DNA of 64,000 nucleotides from Mytilus californianus (lineage: Eukaryota): positions 1,488,001 to 1,552,000 of the forward strand of contig NW_026262685.1 of the NCBI RefSeq assembly GCF_021869535.1. Direction: 5' to 3'. The notes below the pieces were generated by a model. It was given only the letters and a program-made list of their open reading frames with translations, did not search any database and had not been told where the DNA came from. The position numbers and the translations under genes were made by a program. Positions 5,640 to 48,124 of the stretch are shown here, in pieces. How positions within the stretch are numbered: position 1 is the first letter of the stretch; each line of letters begins with the position of its first letter.

Positions 5640-8582
5640 TTTCAAGGTATATGTCGGAGAATTATGGGAGGTATGTGTCACATAGAGATATAGGGTATAT
5701 GTCACAAAGAGATGTGAGGTATATATTACAAAGAGATATAGGGTATATATTACAGAGAGATGCGTAAGGTATATGTCACAGGAATATATGGGGTATATGT
5801 CACAGAGAGATATAGTGTATATGTCACACAGAGATGTGGTGTATATGTCACAGAAATATGTAGGGATTATGTCACAAAAAGATGTGGGGTGTATGTTACA
5901 AAGAGAAGTGTGCAATGTGTCATAGAGGGATATGGAGTATATGTCACAGAGATTTGAGTAAATGTCACAAAGTGATATAAGGTTTATTCTACAGAGAGAT
6001 GGGATGAATATGTCACAGATATATGGACTATATCACTGAAAAATTTGAAGTAAGTGTAACAGAGAGATATGGATACAAGTCAGAGAGATATGATGAATAT
6101 GTCGCTGAAATGTGGGGACTATGTCATAGAGATGTAAGCTAAATGTCACAATTAGATGTGTTGAGTATATCACAAAGATGTGGGGTGTATGTTTCAGAGA
6201 GATGTGGGTTATATGTCACAGAAAGGTTTGGGGTATATGTTTCCGAGAGGTGTGGGTTATATGTCACAGAAAGGTTTGGGGTACATGTATATGTTTCAGA
6301 GAAGATTTGGTTATAGGCCAAAGAAATGTGGGTAATAGGTCACAGAGATGCAGGCTATATGTCACACAAATATGTTGGGTTATTTGTCACAGATAGGTTT
6401 GGGGTAAATGTCACATGAGAGATGTGGGTTATATGTTACAGAGAGGTTTGGGCTATACGTCACTGAGAGATGTTATATATATGTCACAGAGAGATGTGGA
6501 TTATATGTCACAGTTAAGGACGCTATATGTCACAAAGTGATGTGGGTTGTATGTCACATAGCAATGTTGGTTATATGTCACAGAGTAACATGGTTTATAT
6601 CTCACAGAGTAACGTGGTTTATATGTCACAGAGTAATGTGGGTTATATGTCACAGAGTAATGTGGGCTATATGTCACAAAGTGGTTGGGTAATATGTCAC
6701 AGAGTAATATGGGTTATATGTCACAGAGTAATGTGGGTTATATGTCACAGAGTAATGTGGGCTATATGTCACAAAGTGGTTGGGTAATATGTCACAGAGT
6801 AATATGGGTTATATGTCACAGAGTGATGTGGGTTATATGTCACAGAGTAATGTGTGCTGACTAAGATGGAGAGTTGTCTAATTGGCACTCATATCACATC
6901 TTCTTATATCTATATGTCACAAAGTGATTGGGTTATATGTCACAGAGTAATATGGATTATATTTCACAGAGTAATGTGGGTTATATGTCTCAGAGTAACG
7001 TGGGTTATATGACACAGAGTAACATGGGTTATATGTAACAGAGTGATGTGGGTTATATGTCACAGAATAATGTGGGTTATATGTCACAGAGTAACGTGGG
7101 TTATATTTCACAGAATAATGTGGGTTATATGTCCCAGAGATGTGTGTTATATGTCACAGAGATGTGGGTAATATGTCACAGAATAATGTGGGTTATATGT
7201 CACAGAGTAACGTGGGTTATATGTCACAGAGCAATGTGGGCTATATGTCACAAAGTGGTTGGGTAATATGTCACAGAGTAATATGGGTTATATGTCACAG
7301 AGTGATGTGGGTTATATGTCACAGAGTAATGTGTGCTGACTTGGATGGAGAGTTGTATCATTGGCACTCATACCACATCTTCTTATATCTATATGTCACA
7401 AAGTGATTGGGTTATATGTCACAGAGTAATATGGGTTATATGTCACAGAGTAATGTGGGTTATATGTCACAGAGTAATGTGGGCTATATGTCACAAAGTG
7501 GTTGGGTAATATGTCACAGAGTAATATGGGTTATATGTCACAGAGTGATGTGGGTTATATGTCACAGAGTGATGTGGGTTATATGTCACAGAGTAATGTG
7601 TGTTGACTTGAATGGAGAGTTGTCTAATTGGCACTCATACCACATCTTCTTATATCTATATGTCACAAAGTGATTGGGTTATATGTCACAGAGTAATATG
7701 GGTTATATGTAACAGAGTGATGTGGGTTATATGTCACAGAATAATGTGGGTTATATGTCACAGAGTAACGTGGGTTATATGTCACAGAATAATGTGGGTT
7801 ATATGTCCCAGAGATGTGGGTTATATGTCACAGATATGTGGGTTATATGTCACAGAATAATGTGGGTTATATGTCACAGAGTAACGTGGGTTATATGTCA
7901 CAGAGTAATGTGGGCTATATGTCACAAAGTGGTTGGGTAATATGTCACAGAGTAATATGGGTTATTTGTCACAGAGTGGTGTGGGTTATATGTCACAGAG
8001 TAATGTGTGCTGACTTGGATGGAGAGTTGTCTCATCGGCACTCATACCACATCTTCTTATATCTATATGTCACAAAGTGATTGGGTTATATGTCACAGAG
8101 TAATATGGGTTATATGACACAGAGTAATGTGGATTATATGTCTCAGAGTAACGAGGGTTATATGTCACAGAGTAACATGGGTTATATGTAACAGAGAAAT
8201 GTGGGTTATATGTCACAGAATAATGTGGGTTATATGTCACAGAGTAACGTGGGTTATATGTCACAGAATAATGTGGGTTATATGTCACAGAGATGTGGGT
8301 TATATGTCACAGAATAATGTGGGTTATATGTCACAGAGTAACGTGGGTTATATGTCACAGAATAATGTGGGTTATATGTACCAGAGTGATGTGGGTTATA
8401 TGTCACATAGAGATGTGGGTTATATGTACCACAGTGATGTGGGTTATATGTCACAGAGTGATGTGGGTTATATGTCACAGAGTAACGTGGGTTATATGTC
8501 ACAGAGTAACGTGGGTTATATGTCACAGAGATGTGTGTTATATGTCACAGAGATGTGGGGTATATCTCACAGAGAGATATGG
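5640..8582. repeat. 22-24 bp minisatellite (GTCACAGAGTAATGTGGGTTATAT) with higher-order structure
   Basis: About 2.9 kb of directly visible units, diverged on the left and homogeneous on the right. Four related non-unit inserts near 6865, 7344, 7611 and 8018. Confidence 0.95.
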
Positions 8583-10410: not shown

Positions 10411-10839
10411 CTATAAACTGTATAGCATTGGGTTTCTATAAACTGTATAGCATTGGGTTTCTATCAACTGTATAGCATTGGGTTTCTATCAACTGTATAT
10501 ATAGCATTGGGTTTCTATCAACTGTATAGCATTGGGTTTCTATAAACTGTATAGCATTGGGTTTCTATAAACTGTATAGCATTGGGTTTCTATCAACTGT
10601 ATAGCATTGGGTTTCTATAAACTGTATAGCATTGGGTTTCTATAAACTGTATAGCATTGGGTTTCTATAAACTGTATAGCATTGGGTTTCTATAAACTGT
10701 ATAGCATTGGGTTTCTATAAACTGTATAGCATTGGGTTTCTATAAACTGTATAGCATTGGGTTTCTATAAACTGTATAGCATTGGGTTTCTATAAACTGT
10801 ATAGCATTGGGTTTCTATAAACTGTATAGCATTGGGTTT
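10411..10839. repeat. 25-bp tandem repeat CTATAAACTGTATAGCATTGGGTTT, 17 copies
   Basis: Counted units. Variants are CTATC versus CTATA, and one unit with an extra ATAT. Confidence 0.97.
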
Positions 10840-17310: not shown

Positions 17311-17711
17311 ATCCCCATAGAAAAAGTCTTTACACAGAAAACCTTGTTGTCATAAACATGCTGTTCCTTAGGGTATAGCAGTACTACTGAGATAATTGCT
17401 GTTTCATATATATATATTCATTCCATTTGCTTTTACCCAAACCAGTCTCATACAATTTGAAGAGGTTAATAAAAAGAAGAATATGTTTACATTTCAAGAT
17501 TTTTAATCTTTAAAAAAATATAAAACAATAACAAATAACATTATCATAAATAACAGGATTTCTATATCAATGATTAATTTACAATGAAACATATGATAAG
17601 ACTAGATAAATTCTAGCAAGAATTGATAACATGGAATTCACAGCTTAGTTTGTAGTGAGATCAATGTTCAAGGAATGCACCAGGTTATCTCCCCTTCAAT
17701 AACATGAAGGA

Positions 17712-28942: not shown

Positions 28943-31900
28943 CTGAAATTAAACAATAAAATGAACTTTAAATTGGCGATTTGTTTAAATGTATATCGAG
29001 CACAGTCATAGGTTCCTTTTGATTAGGTTTTAGTATAATGATACGGTATACCAAGGATTTGTATAGTGAGAAGGATTGGAATCTCGTGGACTATTTGCAT
29101 TGCCTGTATTGAAATAAGCTGCGTATGATGAGATTTTGCGAGATTTACCGTGATGCATCTCGTTAGTCGTTTTTCGTCCACCATTACAAGTTGAATTTAT
29201 GTCATTTCAAGATAAACTCGGCGTTTTGTAAGTATAATATAACAAAATTACATGATGTGATACTTTTAAGTGTTAAATTATGACAGTTCTGATTCAATAA
29301 ACAGTTTTTATCTTTACAAAACACATTGTCTGCATCTAAATATACTATGCATTTTATCTGTTGTTCATCGTAATAATCCCGCCCAAATAGGCGGTCCAAA
29401 CCACAACTTTAATCTCAATCTCCTCCTTCATAATAAGGATTTGTGTTCAGAAACTTGAATTATATGAAATAAATGTGTGTGGTGCGTGCATATTATAAAC
29501 TATATAGTGTAAGGAGCTTTCGTTGTTGTTACTTTAATGGTTATCTCAGACCAACCGTCAAAAATCGTCCCGCGTCAGTGCAAAAAAGGGTGGACTGATA
29601 AAATATCAATAAAGTGCCACAATCGGTCGATTTCAACACTAAAACGTAATTATATCAATTTATCATAGTTTATTTGTTGTACTTTCTAAAACATTTGGCA
29701 GTAAAATGATAACGTGTGATATTATCATATTTTCAAAATACCGCTACGGTTACTAGATGCATCCAAAAGTCGTTATTATGGGCGGGACCAAATTAACATA
29801 AATAAACTTCCTGTAGTCCCTCGAACGTGATGAAAAATGTTTACAGTAGAAAAAATAGTTTGCATCTGTCGTTTCATGGACATTTACACCAAAAGGTATT
29901 GCTTTTTCCTTTAGAATTGATATGAAAATGTACTGGGAAATTCCTTTATGCCTTCTAGGGTTTACAGAACCCTGCTTACGTTCACCACATCAACTGAGTA
30001 TATCATTATCATACAGTCATACTGCACATAGGCTACTGTCATAGGTGATAGCATATTTTGGCAGTAGTATAAAGTGAAAATATAGGGACACTATTAATTT
30101 ACAAGTTAAAGGCGTGTTCTTACTATCATATATTAAGACTGTCTATCTCTCCAACTTTTTGGTATACCTCAGGCCTGTACCAAAGATAACAGGAGATAGT
30201 TACATTTGTATATGTGTATATATGTGCTTAAAAGTGTGGGGGATAAGGGTACGATTTCAGTCCGACTAATTCAGTTAATGAAATAAAAAATATATATTGC
30301 CGTCTTCAGGATAAATTACAAGCGCTCGTCCCAGACCAGTATAATTTTTCTGAGGCTTAACTGCCCAAATGAATAAAAAGAGAAATTTTATGAAAGACTA
30401 TTTTTCAGGCTTTGTTGTCAAAAAGTGTTCTACAATACACAAAATCTCTAAATTAACACTCATAAACAACAAAAAAGAAAAGAACGGTCCATTCACATGT
30501 ACATGTATGGAGAATTTGAAAGTAAAATTAGGCACTTCATCAAAGAAATACCAAAATAGTCAAAAATTTTATGTTGTCATGGTCAAACATTTGATATTCT
30601 TGGGATGGCTACATGTCTACTAAAGTACATAATTAATCCTTGTTACCCCAATACAATCAACCGGTTATGTACTTGTATAGGATGCATAATGTGCCAATGC
30701 GGACTTTAAAAATCTGAACTTTTTCTGACCAGACTCCATATTCTGCATAAATTCATGTCTTGTATTTTATTATTTTTGTGATGTATTATGAACTGTGTTA
30801 TTTTGTTAATGTTCATATATATATATATATGTATACCATAAAACCCATGATAACTGGATTTAAATTTCAATAAAATACATATCCCAGCATTATTATAGTG
30901 AACATGTAAATTACATCTGTTTACATGGTTTAAACAGTAACAGATTATACATAACCCAGCAGTGACGAGTGCCCAATTATTCGTTTTTAAATTACTGCAA
31001 AATTCTCGAAATGTTATTTGATAAAATATAATTATTTAGCTTTTATATATGGACAGCTAGGAGAGAAGCTTACTCTTGATACATAAGTAATAAAATTTCA
31101 GTTACTGTGTATAATTGTTTAACATCATATTTGCATTCAGTTTTTTACTTTCAGATGTAAAAGATATTTTGTGTATTAATAGTACTTCTCTCTGAAGACA
31201 ATAGTTGGTTATGGCTGTGGATAATAATCAGGTAACTACATTATTAAAAATATAAAATAATACTGATACCAGAATTACTTTAAAATCATTATATTCAGAA
31301 TTTGTGCAAGAATCATACCAGTGTGCCACATCTCTTAATATTTTTTACAGAAATTCTTAGTTGAATTCTAGCCAGCTCTGACAGCTTTCAGCACTAGTAC
31401 TAGTACTGCCACAAAATGTAATTTTTAGATTCTTATTTGTTTTTTATTTGTAGTAGGCAGGTGTATTTTGTTTTACATGTAATGTTTTATTTTCTTTGCT
31501 TAGAAATTAAATGGATTAAAATTATAATTTTACAATATGGAAAATGTCAGGGAAACCCTAATTATATTTTATGTATTTTAGTCTTACAAAAAAAAAAATG
31601 TTTGTTATTTTCAGGATACCAAAGTTAAAGAAAGGAGATATGTTTCTTTGTGGTGAAAGTGCAAGAAATAACACCATATTCTGACTTACAAAATGATCAC
31701 TCATACTGCATGCAATACAGGGAAAGGCATCAAACCAAGCCTCTAGAAGACATACATTTGTAGAATGTATTTTCTATGATGTACACATCGCAGAGGATAC
31801 TTTATGTTCCAAAAAATCAAATACAAATTGTGTCAGCTCCTGTGACAAACTGAAGATGGAAGTTAACCAGAGTATGAAATCACCATTATCAATATGTAAA

Positions 31901-32194
31901 ATCCAACCAGTGACTATATATTTATTCAAATAGTGTCATGAATGGAATTAAAAAAGGACTTGGAAAATTAACATGTTTTAATATTGCTTTGTGTGTGTGA
32001 ATAAAATTTGTTAGCAAGAACAAACTTCTTTTATTACAAGACATCCAGAATACATGATGTCTTCATACATGTCATAGCAGGTACCAGCATTTCTGTGGTT
32101 GGGTGTTCCCAGATAGTTTAGTTTGTAACAATGTTCCATTTTTTGGTCTTTCATGCTTGGTTCATAAAGAATGTAAAAAAATATTTCATGTGCG

Positions 32195-32270
32195 TATAAA
32201 AATAAGGAGATGTGGTACGATTGCTATTAAGACAACTATCATGAGATCAAAGGACAAGGATGTAAACGAA
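32195..32270. mobile_element. Diverged family A copy nested in the P-like element
   Basis: ATAAAAATAAGGAGATGTGGTACGATTGCTATTAAGACAACT. Confidence 0.65.
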
Positions 32271-32689
32271 GACAGGTCAGTGTTCACTAAGATAGGTTTT
32301 CTAGGTACAAAGTAGGTACTTTTGAAAGTGGATAATCAATGGATTTATTGGGTCAATGGGATGAAGGTGGGGTGATGTGGGAATGAATATTTTAGCATGG
32401 TGAGAATTAGTAGAAGAAATAATGTTGCCCGTTCAAGATTGAAAATGAATAAGCTGCTGCATTTCTGCCTCACATTGAGCATGAAAAATTATTTAAAAAA
32501 GTGAAAATGAAGCTATGTGACATAAACAATCTGAGCAACAGCTAAAAATGAAATAATATTGACTATTTCATTTTGTGAAAAATCTGTCCAAGAGAAATCC
32601 TCCTGCCTTACCCCCTAAAAATGAAATGATTGTCCCCTTATACATGTATATGCTCTTAATGCTAATAAAAAATGTCAAATCTTTACCAA

Positions 32690-32865
32690 TATAAAAATAA
32701 GGAGATGTATGAATGCCAATGAGACAACTATCCATCAAATTCAAATGAAGTGGATGTAAGCAATTATAGGCAACTGTACAGCCTTCAACAACGAGAAAAA
32801 CCCATATTGTATAGTTGGCTCTAAAAGGCCACAGCGTGAAAAATGTGAAACAAATTATGAGTAGG
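32690..32865. mobile_element. Family A copy nested in the P-like element
   Basis: ATAAAAATAAGGAGATGTATGAATGCCAATGAGACAACTATCCATC...GCCTTCAACAACGAG...TAAAAGGCC. Confidence 0.75.
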
Positions 32866-34472
32866 GTGTATGACACAATAAGCAGATAACCCATCAAAGT
32901 TATTCGTAAAATGCTGTTAGTTGCTTGTGTTACTAATGTTTTTCACAAGGGAAATTTACTTTTACTTGCTATGGGTACAACCATTGATTTTAGGGTATGA
33001 ATGATACGTTCGTTTTTGAAGACCCTACATCAACTGTCAAGATGAAGAACAGGAATAAAAGCCATGTTCATTGATAATTTTCTATGTTTTCTATGTATTG
33101 TGTGAGATTTAGTCCCATGTACATGTACATTTACTCCATATCTTTTCAGTTTCTATTTTACTGTTGTTTATAATCATGAACTTATTTTTAACTTCCTGCC
33201 AGTCCTTCAATGAACTCAAACCTCTATAGTTCCAGTTTACACTCATGTATTTGCAGTTTGAACAGACGAGCATTCTTGAAAATCAATGAATTCATTTAAT
33301 TTCTCATTTGTTGCGGACCTTACATGTATATTGATTCTGTTAAATTTATTCATAACTTAACTATGATAAAATAAAACAACATACAGATAAAATTTGTATG
33401 GAGACTGACTATTCTTGAAGACTGTATGATTTCCTCTAACTGTCAATTATCTTGTGGTAGTTGGGTCAGTTTCATATACTAGACTACTACTAGAAGAAAG
33501 GACAAAGACAAGCTGCGAAAATAAATAATTGTTTTGACCTTCTCTTTGGGGTTATCTTAAACAGCTATTACTAGTATCATAAAGATGTGTTGGGCTACTC
33601 AAATTACGATCACAAGAAAAACAACAACAATGTCAACATAATTACGATAATTTTCGGCAACTGCCAAATGTAAACGACTATCAAAGTTTATTTTCCAGCT
33701 AAAGAGAGGTCCTCAATATGACATACTCAGAAGGAATCGTGATATCTTTGCGAATTAAAACAAAATATTGATCAAAGATGCTAAAACAAACAAAACCTAA
33801 CAACAAACAAGTCAGAAATGATTATCTTGCAATACACGCTGTTCAACCGGATATTTACTAACAGGCGCGTATAAATTTATAGTGGCGAGTACGCAACATC
33901 TCACGATACGCGAGAAGTGTCGATATACCGCGAGATTCCAATCCTTCTCACTATACAAATCCTTGGGTATACCAACATTTAATTCTAAATCTGTTGAAGT
34001 CGTACAAACAACGATACTAAGTGTTTAGACAAATTACAGGGTATGCATTTTAATCTCAGGTCCATAAAGAGATTTATTTGCGCCTGTATTGTTCCTTGCA
34101 CAAATATATTCAATGGACATTTATTTAATCTGGACTTTACTGTTTAAGAAACTTATAATCGATTTGAATTAAGAAAAGAAAGTTTATTTTTGTTATCTTT
34201 TACTTTTGATATATATTTATTCTGCAAGTTAAGGCTTTTATATTGATATAAAACGACTTTTAAAGGGAAAATATTCATGGTACAAATGTATGATATTCAA
34301 AGATCCATGAGTATTAAATATAAATAAGAATATCAAATGATTAAGGTGTTATTCTTTCTTCTGTAACAAAAGAATTGAATTAAAATTAAAAATTTAAATA
34401 ATTCTCTAGATCAAATTAAAAAAAACAACCTACCAGTTGCAATTAAACTATACATAACTATAACTGTATATA

Positions 34473-43530: not shown

Positions 43531-43568
43531 CAAGGATTTGTATAGTGAGAACACTATACAAATCCTTG
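43531..43568. mobile_element. 38-bp remnant of the P-like family (21 bp left TIR + 17 bp right TIR)
   Basis: CAAGGATTTGTATAGTGAGAA + CACTATACAAATCCTTG; 7-bp TSD ACTAAGG at 43524-43530 and 43569-43575. Confidence 0.85.
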
Positions 43569-44045: not shown

Positions 44046-47000
44046 CATATATGATGTTGTTTTCTAAATCAATATTTTGTGGGGATTGATATAATACTCA
44101 AGACAACATTAAATTAGGGAATCATTCAAAATGGCCCTTGTGAGCTTCAGAAAATAAACACACTTTTATTGATTGTGTTATCCATTAAGGGAGGTTTTAT
44201 CTGCTTTTCTTAAACTTTTTCTGTTTGGTTGTCCTGTTTGCATGTAACTGAAGTTTCAACAACAAAAAAATAGGAAATAATCTAGACAAAGGTTCTCGTT
44301 TTATTCAACAAAAATCATAAAATTCTAGGATTTTTTTTTTGGAAGTCTGACAGTCTTTTTTAGAACTTGCAGGGACTTTTGTTCCCTGGCAATAATCTAA
44401 AAATGCCATTTGACGTCAACAATCTCCCACTCATATCATCATAATACCAAGAAATAGGTTATGGTTTTAATAATTTGTTTCTGGAAATCAAATTTCTGTT
44501 ATATAATATAGAAAGCTAAATATAAGTTTCATATTTCAACAAAAGAATTTTGTAGATTTTTATCAATGTTTGAAAAAAAATCTTTATCCTTACACATTAA
44601 AACTGATCTCTAAATAATGAGTTTTCTATTTGCTTCATTTCCACTTTCAGGCATTCTGTATCATTACATAAAATGTTAACTGTTGTACCATATAATTACA
44701 GTAAAATAACATATTATGCAAACTTTTTATATCCTGTGTAAGCTGTGCATTTAAGGAAACAATATATCACCAACACTAAGCCCAAGTCAACACAGTCAAA
44801 CAATACATACTAATTTAATGGCAGATTTTGTTCCTTATTATGTATAATATATAGTCTCAAAACATGATCTCATCTTGTATCAATTTTCACCTAGGTACTT
44901 AGTACTATAATTTATCTGATACTGAATCAGTCCTTTCCTCTAATTTTACCGCTGGAAGCATTGTTCGCCATTTAATTACGTTTTTCTTTGACCAAATTTG
45001 TGTTTATCCACTGTCAATATCTAAGACTCTGGACTCGTCAACATAAACATGTCATACGATAGTCTATGTCATGCCTCTTATTATCCTAACCTCGTCAAAT
45101 CAACCGGCAACATTTTTAATTTCTCTAAAATTATTTCATCTTCTGAACCATGAAAAAGATTTCATGACACAGAACTACAAAGTAATACGCCTTTAACCAG
45201 ATATTGTCCATATGATATGGATGATGTCCAACAAAACATTTTCAATTTGTAGATTTTTTTCATCTGATTCAAGTCAATGAAATGGACATTAGCGGTCTAC
45301 GATCAGAATGTTACAAATGAACGACAAATTTCACATTTAAATGGCGAGATCCTTCTGTACTGGGACATTACTTTTATACCAGAGATGCAATCTTTTAACA
45401 AATGACCACAACATTAAGATAATTAATTTCAATATGACTCAAGTACAAACGATTTGTTTCCTCGTCTCTAGTCTTTGGTGAAATTAGACATATGTAGGTG
45501 TGGAAATAAGTAAAATTCAATCTGATTAACATTCAGTAAAATATCTTGTATTCACTTACTGATAAAATAATACTCTAAATTAAAATATTGGTCCAAGGTA
45601 CTATCTTATGTCATTAAGTCACTACCATCTATTTTATGTACTTCTAAAACAATCAAAAACACAAATGCATTTTTTCCATTCTGTCTAGAGTATCTAAAGT
45701 ATCATTATAAATGTATGTAGTTCTTTGGTTTAACAAATGTCAAAACTTATCTTGGGAAGTTAAAAGATTGACAAAATATCTTAGAGAGAACAAATCTATT
45801 TCCTTTTGGACAGAAGCTTAAACATTGAAATGATAACCTTCTCAAACTTGACTTCCCCGTGTCAACATTGAAACAGGAGACAGGGAAACCAAAGGTCCCC
45901 TAAATATCTAACTTCAGATCAATGCATACATCAACATTTTTTTCTGCATTTTTAGGTACAAGAAATCAATTTCTGAGTAAAGATATTGTATTTTTATTTA
46001 TCATTTATGACAGTTTTAAACATGACTATTTCAGTCATTATTACAGGATTGTCAGCTACATGTGACAATTGAAGAATATTAATTAATTATTCAAACAAGG
46101 TGAATATAAAATGTTCCACCGATTCAATACTTCCAATATTTTTGATTGACGGAATCAGCACAGAGACGAAGGCATGACTTAATCAATTGAATGTTTTACA
46201 CAATGCAACTTTCAAATATACCTTTAAGATCATGTTATCGACAATTTAAACATTTGCAATTGTCAATAAACAGCATGAAAAGTAAATTAAAAATTTTAAT
46301 AATAAATAATACACATAAAATCTACTTTAGAAACTTAAAAATGTTAAAAGATAAGCCAAGTCTGAATTCATTTAAACAAGAAATAATATTATACGGAACA
46401 TAATATACTTTCTGTTCTACCAATAAAATTTAAAACTTATTTGAATGTCAAGTGACAAGTATTTTAATTGTAAGCAAGACTATATTTCAATTAAAAATAA
46501 TTACAACTATAATTACTTAAAGTTCTATTTTGTTGTTTATTTTCAAAAATTCTTTAACAATATTAGAGGTGATATTCAATGTAGCAAACTGAATCAATTT
46601 CATATTTTTGTATTAATCAATATCAAGTCTGGCATCTGTTAAAGTTGTATCAAGTACAGAACAAATTGTTAGTGCAATAAATATTCTTAGGACATTAAAT
46701 TACATATATTTTTCAAAATCAATCAAGATGTACTAAACTTAGTGTCTATCCACCAAGAGTGGTCCTGCATGAATATTAATGATATATTTGCAAGGGAATG
46801 TTCAGCAAACAATAATAAATTTAAGGGATCATCCATACATGCCAACCATTTCCAAAGTATGCAAAGTGCACTCCATTGCGAAGTAGAAAATTCAACAACA
46901 ACTTTTATCCAGCTTATTTACTGTATTAGTCCAGAAATATTTAGGTTTTTCTATAAGTTTATATATTATTCTATTGAAAATGATTTTTGTCGGAGGGAGG

Positions 47001-47085
47001 GCTTTAAAAGAAGTGTGTTTTGCACGCTTGGAAAATGGTTGACAACTATGGATGGACGACCCCTAAATAAATATAAATATGAAAA

Positions 47086-47135
47086 CTAGGATTTGTATAG
47101 TATTGTACTATAGTATTGTACTATACAAATCCTTG
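47086..47135. mobile_element. 50-bp remnant of the P-like family (16 + 16 bp TIR ends with 18-bp filler)
   Basis: CTAGGATTTGTATAGT + ATTGTACTATAGTATTGT + ACTATACAAATCCTTG; flanks ATGAAAA / ATGAAAG (6/7 match). Confidence 0.8.
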
Positions 47136-48124
47136 ATGAAAGCAGTTTTCATACTTATGTTAAAATAGGACTGCTACTAAATTATCAAAAACTTTTATCA
47201 ACTTTGACTGTTTGAATGGGCTACTTTTCCATGGTCAACGTTTGGTAACTTTAAAAGAGGATAAAGAGATAATACCTGTTATGATAAAAGTACTGATAGT
47301 ACTGTTGACTTAGTACCTTTACTTAGCATCTTGTTACTAATCCTTAGTTAATATTTCTTTATATTATCCACAGGATTATTCACCAATTATCTACTTCAGC
47401 CCTAGTCATCTTGACATTAAATAGATTTATAAACAAGCCATCTTGTACTGATAAGTTGTCTAAGAACAAATGCAAACTTTTTTAAATCTTAAATTTGTTT
47501 TCTGTCTTATTAGGGTGTTGATTTTACTGCACACTTTTATAACCTTGTTTACTGTAAACATTAGGGATTACTGCCTTAGTTGAGTATTGAGGTTCTTTTA
47601 AACAGTATTTTGAGTTTCATAAACTGGTGGTGACATTGATTTTAGTAAATATCATGCCATTTAATTAAGCTTTAAATTTCTTTTGTAAATTCAAGTAAAA
47701 AATAAGAAATAAAACCCTTTCATAATAAAAATGTTATATTTTCCCTTATTGTATTATTCTTGTGATGTGCTTCTATAATTATTGGTCTCATAAAGAGATA
47801 TACTAAATGATGTTATTTGGTAATCTTAACTAGGTGCATGGGTTGCAATCTGCATTTTGTGATTTTCTGTCAGCTTTAATGTTTGAGTAAAAAAACAAAA
47901 TCCCTATACATTGTAATTGCCTTTAATCCATAACTTTAGGATCAGATCAAACCCCTCAATAAATCATTTATAACTAATCATAATGTATACTACAAAACAC
48001 AGTGCCAATAATATATGTACAAAGCCTGGTAAATGTTGGGAATCTGCATTGGACTAAATTTACAAGTTTATGTATAAAACTAAATAAAACATGCATTGGG
48101 ATAAATTTACATGTTTATTTATAA

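Follow-up and report, generated by a model that had tools for sequence, protein, structure and literature searches.

An excision scar of a P-like transposon with a direct-repeat filler in a mussel genome and its place in a genome-wide scar record

The 64-base site at positions 47079–47142 of the analysed mussel DNA stretch (64,000 nucleotides, referred to as the window) is an excision scar of a P/THAP9-like transposon. The insert between the two remaining transposon ends repeats the junction sequence in direct orientation, with 4 nt of TATA microhomology at its borders. The orthologous site of a sister species is empty, and direct repeats of this kind are enriched in scars that the same transposon family has left throughout the genome.

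Anatomy of the scar

The site consists of two 16-nt stubs of terminal inverted repeat (TIR) around an 18-nt filler, enclosed by 7-bp target duplications. Its parts are as follows:

47079–47085, plus strand: left target-site duplication, ATGAAAA; last base differs from the right copy
47086–47101, plus strand: left TIR stub, CTAGGATTTGTATAGT, 16 nt; base 2 (47087) is T where the family has A
47096–47125, plus strand: exact direct repeat, period 13, 2.3 copies, 30 nt; extends from within the left stub across the filler into the first bases of the right stub
47102–47119, plus strand: filler between the stubs, 18 nt
47120–47135, minus strand: right TIR stub, ACTATACAAATCCTTG, 16 nt; identical to the family terminus
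47136–47142, plus strand: right target-site duplication, ATGAAAG; the form found in the sister species

The two target duplications agree at six of seven bases, and the stub pair (47086–47135) are mutual reverse complements except for one base (47087). Compared with the TIR of a family copy located at 29052–33965 of the window, the stubs agree at 16/16 and 15/16 bases. The layout given in a preliminary description of the site (16 bp of each TIR with one substitution, a filler of 18 bp, and flanks matching at 6 of 7 positions) is correct in every detail, and the twofold repeat that it placed across the TIR ends was recovered as a 13-mer that is present in two exact tandem copies (47098–47110 and 47111–47123) and nowhere else in the window, and that reaches into both stubs. 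A repeat finder reported this duplication too, in a different register. The self-match at a lag of 13 is 17 nt long, so that 4 nt (TATA) overlap at the repeat borders. Thirteen of the 18 filler nucleotides are accounted for by the tandem copy, with ATTGT (or TTG) as the residue, and removal of one 13-nt unit leaves stub-TTG-stub, a perfect 15 + 3 + 15 palindrome. A second subfamily carries A at end position 17, and many scars read AGTAAGA...TCTTACT; if the parent element belonged to this subfamily, the stubs would measure 17 nt, which leaves a 16-nt filler, and TTG would be the only primary addition. The CTAGG end variant, to which the left stub's T corresponds, is present at only 30 places genome-wide and is therefore regarded as a sporadic substitution and not as the mark of a subfamily.

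The 108-nt stretch 47062–47169 folds with −19.7 kcal/mol (z −7.1). The flanks outside the scar in this stretch are likewise inverted repeats (26 nt, 81%), and the ancestral target, ATGAAAG-C-AGTTTTCAT, was already a small palindrome.

Insertion history at the orthologous site

Public sequencing runs under three organism labels (A, B, and C) were used in the form of Logan contigs, which indicate presence and not allele frequency. For organism B, the sister species, runs X7 and X10 from separate studies provided contigs of 3,915 and 3,849 bp with about 3.6% divergence. These contigs align to 46600–47078 and resume at 47136, skipping the 57 bp at 47079–47135, and six letters fit both sides of the gap. 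Since 57 bp equal one copy of the duplication plus the 50-bp scar, the site is empty in organism B. The comparison of orthologous sites in sister species, which the preliminary description had suggested as a check, thus revealed a single target copy and, with it, an insertion history at this locus.

For a second individual of organism A, a contig of 1,615 bp aligns without gaps, differs at two single bases, and contains the scar and the 13-nt duplication. Both are also present in a contig of organism C (run X20), which covers 47093–47345 with 0 differences, and a contig of run X3 covers the whole site including the 13-nt duplication with 0 gaps. The occurrence of the duplication in independent contigs of X3 and X20 indicates that it is not an assembly error but real and shared. 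Because the site is empty in B and scarred in A and C, the element must have arrived after the split from B and then left. The excision had been called older in the preliminary description, a term that fits weakly with an event younger than the sister-species split and with two derived changes (A at 47085 and T at 47087; organism B reads ATGAAAG in the alignment) that are not scattered but lie 2 nt apart at the left boundary. Paralogous empty sites were also sought by DNA searches with the flanks, where the only multi-copy part was a MITE-like repeat left of the scar, and this search was uninformative. The MITE-like repeat (46984–47070, with an inverted partner at 46830–46877) has more than 35 copies of 77–83% identity and stops roughly 10 bp short of the scar on its left side.

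The transposon family

With up to three mismatches allowed, the stub 16-mer was located seven times in the window, compared to 1.0 expected, and none of 100 shuffles gave seven. Two matches bound a 4,914-bp element, two form another scar (the first scar), two belong to the scar at 47079–47142, and the seventh, at 17601 with three mismatches, is at chance level. The two additional features identified by these stub matches are:

29052–33965, plus strand: family copy, 4,914 bp, TIRs of about 34 nt, 7-bp duplication GGTATAC
43531–43568, plus strand: first scar, 21 + 17 nt of TIR, perfect duplication ACTAAGG

The scar at 47079–47142 is separate from the first scar and shares its family with the 4.9-kb copy, which bears out the earlier proposal of an independent excision within one family. 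Open frames in the 4.9-kb copy do not exceed 124 aa, and a Pfam search with its ten longest open-frame pieces had zero matches; this copy is therefore considered non-autonomous.

The exact 35-nt end was found at 69 places genome-wide, with approximately 14 facing pairs spaced 1.5 to 13 kb apart. One pair of facing exact 35-nt TIRs, C165:50966354(+) and C165:50979344(−), encloses by its coordinates the best genomic match to PF21787, the N-terminal RNase H domain of P transposase (C165:50973932–50974399, E 4.8e-19, in an open frame of 893 aa). A profile search with PF12017 (Tnp_P_element) had no match in the genome or in the controls, and PF21787 was used instead. Judged by these coordinates alone, the family is classified as P/THAP9-like. 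The segment between the paired TIRs, 12,991 bp in length, is a putative autonomous copy, known from the coordinates of the TIRs and of the PF21787 match.

Genome-wide scar record

The whole 1.65-Gb assembly was screened for a scar pattern composed of the outer 14 nt of the TIR, 0–30 nt, and the inverted outer 14 nt, with exact 14-mers required. At least 661 scars were found, and the reversed-pattern control had 0, so the genome-wide scar record hoped for in the preliminary description is present. Forty loci were read, which contained 31 distinct scars (33 rows, two of them being nested parts), and 27 of the 31 are flanked by 7-bp duplications that are perfect or one base off. Stub lengths are mostly 16–20 nt across the family, with some palindromic 20 + 20 and 23 + 23 joins, and some scars retain 32–38 nt of one end. 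According to junction classes sorted by eye from the listed matches, the majority of scars are simple joins with 0–3 nt between the stubs. The scars (661, by exact 14-mers) are far more numerous than the exact 35-nt element ends, of which there are 69; many more sites have been vacated by the family than it now occupies.

Some junctions recur in identical form, such as AGT-AATAT-ACT, which has a 5-nt filler (15 loci), and AGTA+TCTTACT (10 loci). These are either deterministic repair outcomes or passengers of larger repeats. Examples are located at:

C13:52829538, C24:33201904, C165:85681549: recurrent identical junction
C2:42293220, C121:61932868: recurrent identical junction

Furthermore, one 42-bp scar sequence occurs at at least eight loci, including C2:527888, C13:3159772, C105:1318141, C110:6567623, and C132:6374997. 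Two of its copies among the loci read, L029 and L031, are identical even in their 10-bp flanks, and at least this pair thus lies inside a larger repeat that was amplified after the excision. About eight scars possess a third transposon end, copied to the tip (CAAGG), within a single pair of target duplications:

C1:44623524: third-end scar
C46:28985390: third-end scar
C99:55888819: third-end scar
C106:1493114: third-end scar
C110:30712028: third-end scar
C132:109760928: third-end scar
C165:49396859: third-end scar
L027: third-end scar, in which the copy of the third end runs 2 nt into the flank
L036: third-end scar

Such scars could stem from templated copying of a whole end or from aberrant re-insertion.

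Within the window, a full copy and two scars (29052–33965, 43531–43568, and 47086–47135) are found within 18 kb, although scars average about one in 2.5 Mb across the genome (P about 3e-4 by a post hoc Poisson calculation), and on C1 three gaps between scars are shorter than 30 kb versus 0.65 expected (P 0.03). Local hopping is known for P elements of flies, and by analogy the clustering of scars suggests that it may occur in the mussel family as well.

Origin of the filler

No match to the filler at up to two mismatches was detected in the 4.9-kb copy. Other genomic occurrences of a 17-mer from the filler are no more frequent than those of the reversed control, and none lies inside the listed facing TIR pairs; neither the inner sequence of the scar at any second locus nor the un-duplicated junction at 0 mismatches was found anywhere in the 1.65-Gb genome. 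A derivation of the filler from the interior of a longer family member, which the preliminary description had named as the finding that would overturn its interpretation, is contradicted by these searches. The filler is a local copy, made up of an exact 13-nt unit that extends over both stubs. A template for the residual TTG or ATTGT was sought by eye in the TIR, its stubs, and the adjoining flanks, where the only candidate is a 5-nt match (TTGTA) to the TIR, which is not significant.

Direct repeats also characterise other scars of the family. Among the 44 scars with 13–30 nt between the 14-mers, 9–10 hold a direct repeat of at least 13 nt at a lag of 13–25, as counted by eye. Applied to 180 kb of ordinary DNA, the same criterion identified 12 independent loci, and with a rough total scar length of about 26 kb and the by-eye counts this corresponds to 1.7 expected versus 9–10 found (Poisson P about 8e-5), or about five times the background. 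The architecture at 47079–47142 resembles that of the scar at C1:100683883, which contains a 19-nt exact tandem copy. A duplicated TATAG(T) junction was found at four loci, of which two are separated by 6.3 kb. At two loci, plus a variant, the junction contains 9 nt copied from the TIR. At locus L034 (L034:1521–1600; C46:5745059), the right stub and five flank bases form a 21-nt unit present in at least four copies, one of which is diverged; this is a minisatellite that grew from a scar after repair. The window itself also contains minisatellite arrays, at 5718–8535 and 10411–10839, with units of 24 nt and 25 nt, respectively.

Proposed mechanism and alternative explanations

The following course of events is proposed. 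A P/THAP9-like cut-and-paste transposon entered ATGAAAG after the sister-species split, duplicating 7 bp, and was later excised; as with the P element of Drosophila, staggered cuts would have left the outer 16–20 nt of each inverted end as 3' tails. As both tails would share one sequence, they could not pair with each other. They may then have been shortened to 16–17 nt before error-prone, synthesis-dependent end joining sealed the break, during which a few bases (TTG or ATTGT) would be added at the junction. The growing strand would copy the start of the other stub, detach, pair again in a shifted register through the TATA (4 nt), and resume copying, which would create the exact 13-nt direct repeat. 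Taken as a whole, including insertion, excision, copying at the time of repair, and joining of the polymerase theta type, this account is marginally favoured. That the 13-nt copy was made during repair is, considered by itself, moderately probable; it is favoured by the excess of direct repeats in scars over ordinary DNA, by the short templated junctions that recur at separate loci, and by the failure to find an un-duplicated form in the reads or elsewhere in the genome.

The same final sequence is equally expected if a simple junction (stub-TTG-stub) had been sealed first and replication slippage at TATA had duplicated 13 nt generations later, in which case the duplication would tell nothing about the repair pathway. 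The simple junction would fold into a hairpin with a nearly perfect stem of 15 bp and a loop of 3 nt, and palindromes may favour slippage. Moreover, expansion after repair does occur at scars, as seen in the minisatellite of L034, and exact tandem duplications with units of 13–25 nt exist in ordinary DNA as well; yet their background frequency predicts far fewer repeats over all scars than were found, and the scar at 47079–47142 is younger than most background DNA. A simple precursor junction is also nowhere else in the genome, and no un-duplicated allele was seen in the scar carriers, which are three runs only, under two organism labels, and represented by contigs that do not report allele frequency. 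One of these runs may be the source sample, and an un-duplicated allele could therefore exist unseen. On balance, later slippage is considered rather unlikely.

Synthesis of the theta type would be unnecessary if the scar had arisen by classical non-homologous end joining with untemplated additions or through aborted copying of the sister chromatid. Simple joins of 0–3 nt, which predominate in the family, could be explained in this manner, and the scars with 32–38 nt of one end are compatible with aborted sister-chromatid copying. An exact local direct repeat of 13 nt, however, is not anticipated from untemplated addition, and a copy taken from the sister chromatid would have delivered TIR positions 17 onward (GAGAAGG or AAGAAGG) instead of the observed filler; both variants are thus improbable for the scar at 47079–47142. 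It is very improbable that the 50 bp were inserted ready-made, as a tiny internally deleted element or as a piece inside another repeat, since, even if the 42-bp scar sequence demonstrates that scar-like sequences can be multi-copy, its fetched pair L029/L031 rides in a larger repeat, the inner sequence of the present scar is unique, the gap in the sister species is exactly one duplication copy plus 50 bp, and 16-nt stubs miss most of the 34-nt TIR.

Polymerase theta

A helical domain and an A-family polymerase domain on one strand are the architecture expected of POLQ. Profile matches with this arrangement were found at one locus:

C101:861683–863855, minus strand: POLQ_helical exons
C101:840796–847640, minus strand: DNA_pol_A exons

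At this locus (C101:840796–863855) the helical-domain exons are located upstream of the A-family polymerase exons on the same strand, 14–23 kb apart, and POLQ is thus probably encoded by the mussel genome. Loci with single domains apart from C101 are situated at C99:108.99 Mb and C99:127.41 Mb. Of the preliminary claim of theta-mediated repair, the part that stands is that templated junctions are enriched in the scars and that a POLQ-like locus is encoded; theta is a candidate maker of the filler, as later slippage would give the same sequence. On the model of mus308 in flies and polq-1 in worms, polymerase theta would be the enzyme behind the proposed joining.

Comparison with known systems

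The stagger of the cuts made at Drosophila P elements lies 17 nt inside the element end, and the 16–17 nt stubs of the mussel scar fit this distance. Like the mussel scar, Drosophila P footprints keep TIR stubs of about 16–17 nt on each side within intact target duplications, the breaks have non-complementary 3' tails, and a minority of junctions carry inserts of more than 3 bp that are templated nearby, including direct repeats. Such inserts were found in 13% of fly P-element junctions, were templated in nearly all cases by flanking sequence, and were reduced in mus308 D2/2003, an allele combination that greatly lowers the protein (Chan, Yu and McVey, 2010; PMC2895639). The systems differ in the target duplication, which is 8 bp in Drosophila P and 7 bp in the mussel family, and in the many mussel scars with stubs of 20 nt or more. 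In addition, the mussel scars are natural, fixed, and known from sequence, whereas the Drosophila footprints were recovered from crosses and tested by genetics. Internally deleted, non-autonomous P elements, which are formed by aborted synthesis-dependent strand annealing, resemble the mussel scars in that both ends are retained and the interior is lost. In contrast to them, the scar at 47079–47142 retains only 16–17 nt of each end, and the filler between these does not come from the element.

In Caenorhabditis elegans, 24% of junctions at Tc1 breaks had templated inserts, and none was left without polq-1 (van Schendel et al., 2015; PMC4490562). Germline repair of Tc1 breaks resembles the mussel scars in its templated inserts, which are identical to break-proximal sequence, but Tc1 leaves 2-nt tails and small scars, whereas the mussel stubs are long. 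The worm study had already suggested that natural genomes might serve as a record of past repair; its 45 natural isolates contained fewer than 10 scars, too few for analysis (PMC4490562), whereas a single family in the mussel genome has at least 661. Literature searches on P-type scars in mussels or other bivalves yielded no paper.

Significance of the scar record

Considered alone, the scar at 47079–47142 is one ordinary instance of a known mechanism. This mechanism is the one known for P elements; new are the mussel host, the natural and fixed condition of the scar, for which an empty site provides a date, and the size of the record. Because long stubs preserve both ends of the break, junctions can be sorted one by one into blunt, microhomology, and templated classes, and the empty orthologous site together with the exact local copy in the filler makes the present scar a clean, dated example of the templated class. 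How transposon breaks are repaired is known from genetic work on flies and worms, and the mussel scar record is readable in a group without repair genetics. It is tentatively proposed, with doubt slightly outweighing confidence, that the mussel germline routinely mends P-type breaks by synthesis-dependent joining of the polymerase theta type and that the fixed scars of this family form a natural, quantitative repair spectrum. If this is true, the record would provide a lophotrochozoan spectrum of repair outcomes, including recurrent deterministic junctions, direct-repeat inserts, and three-ended scars, and it would also display the cutting stagger of the enzyme and trace local hopping along the chromosome.
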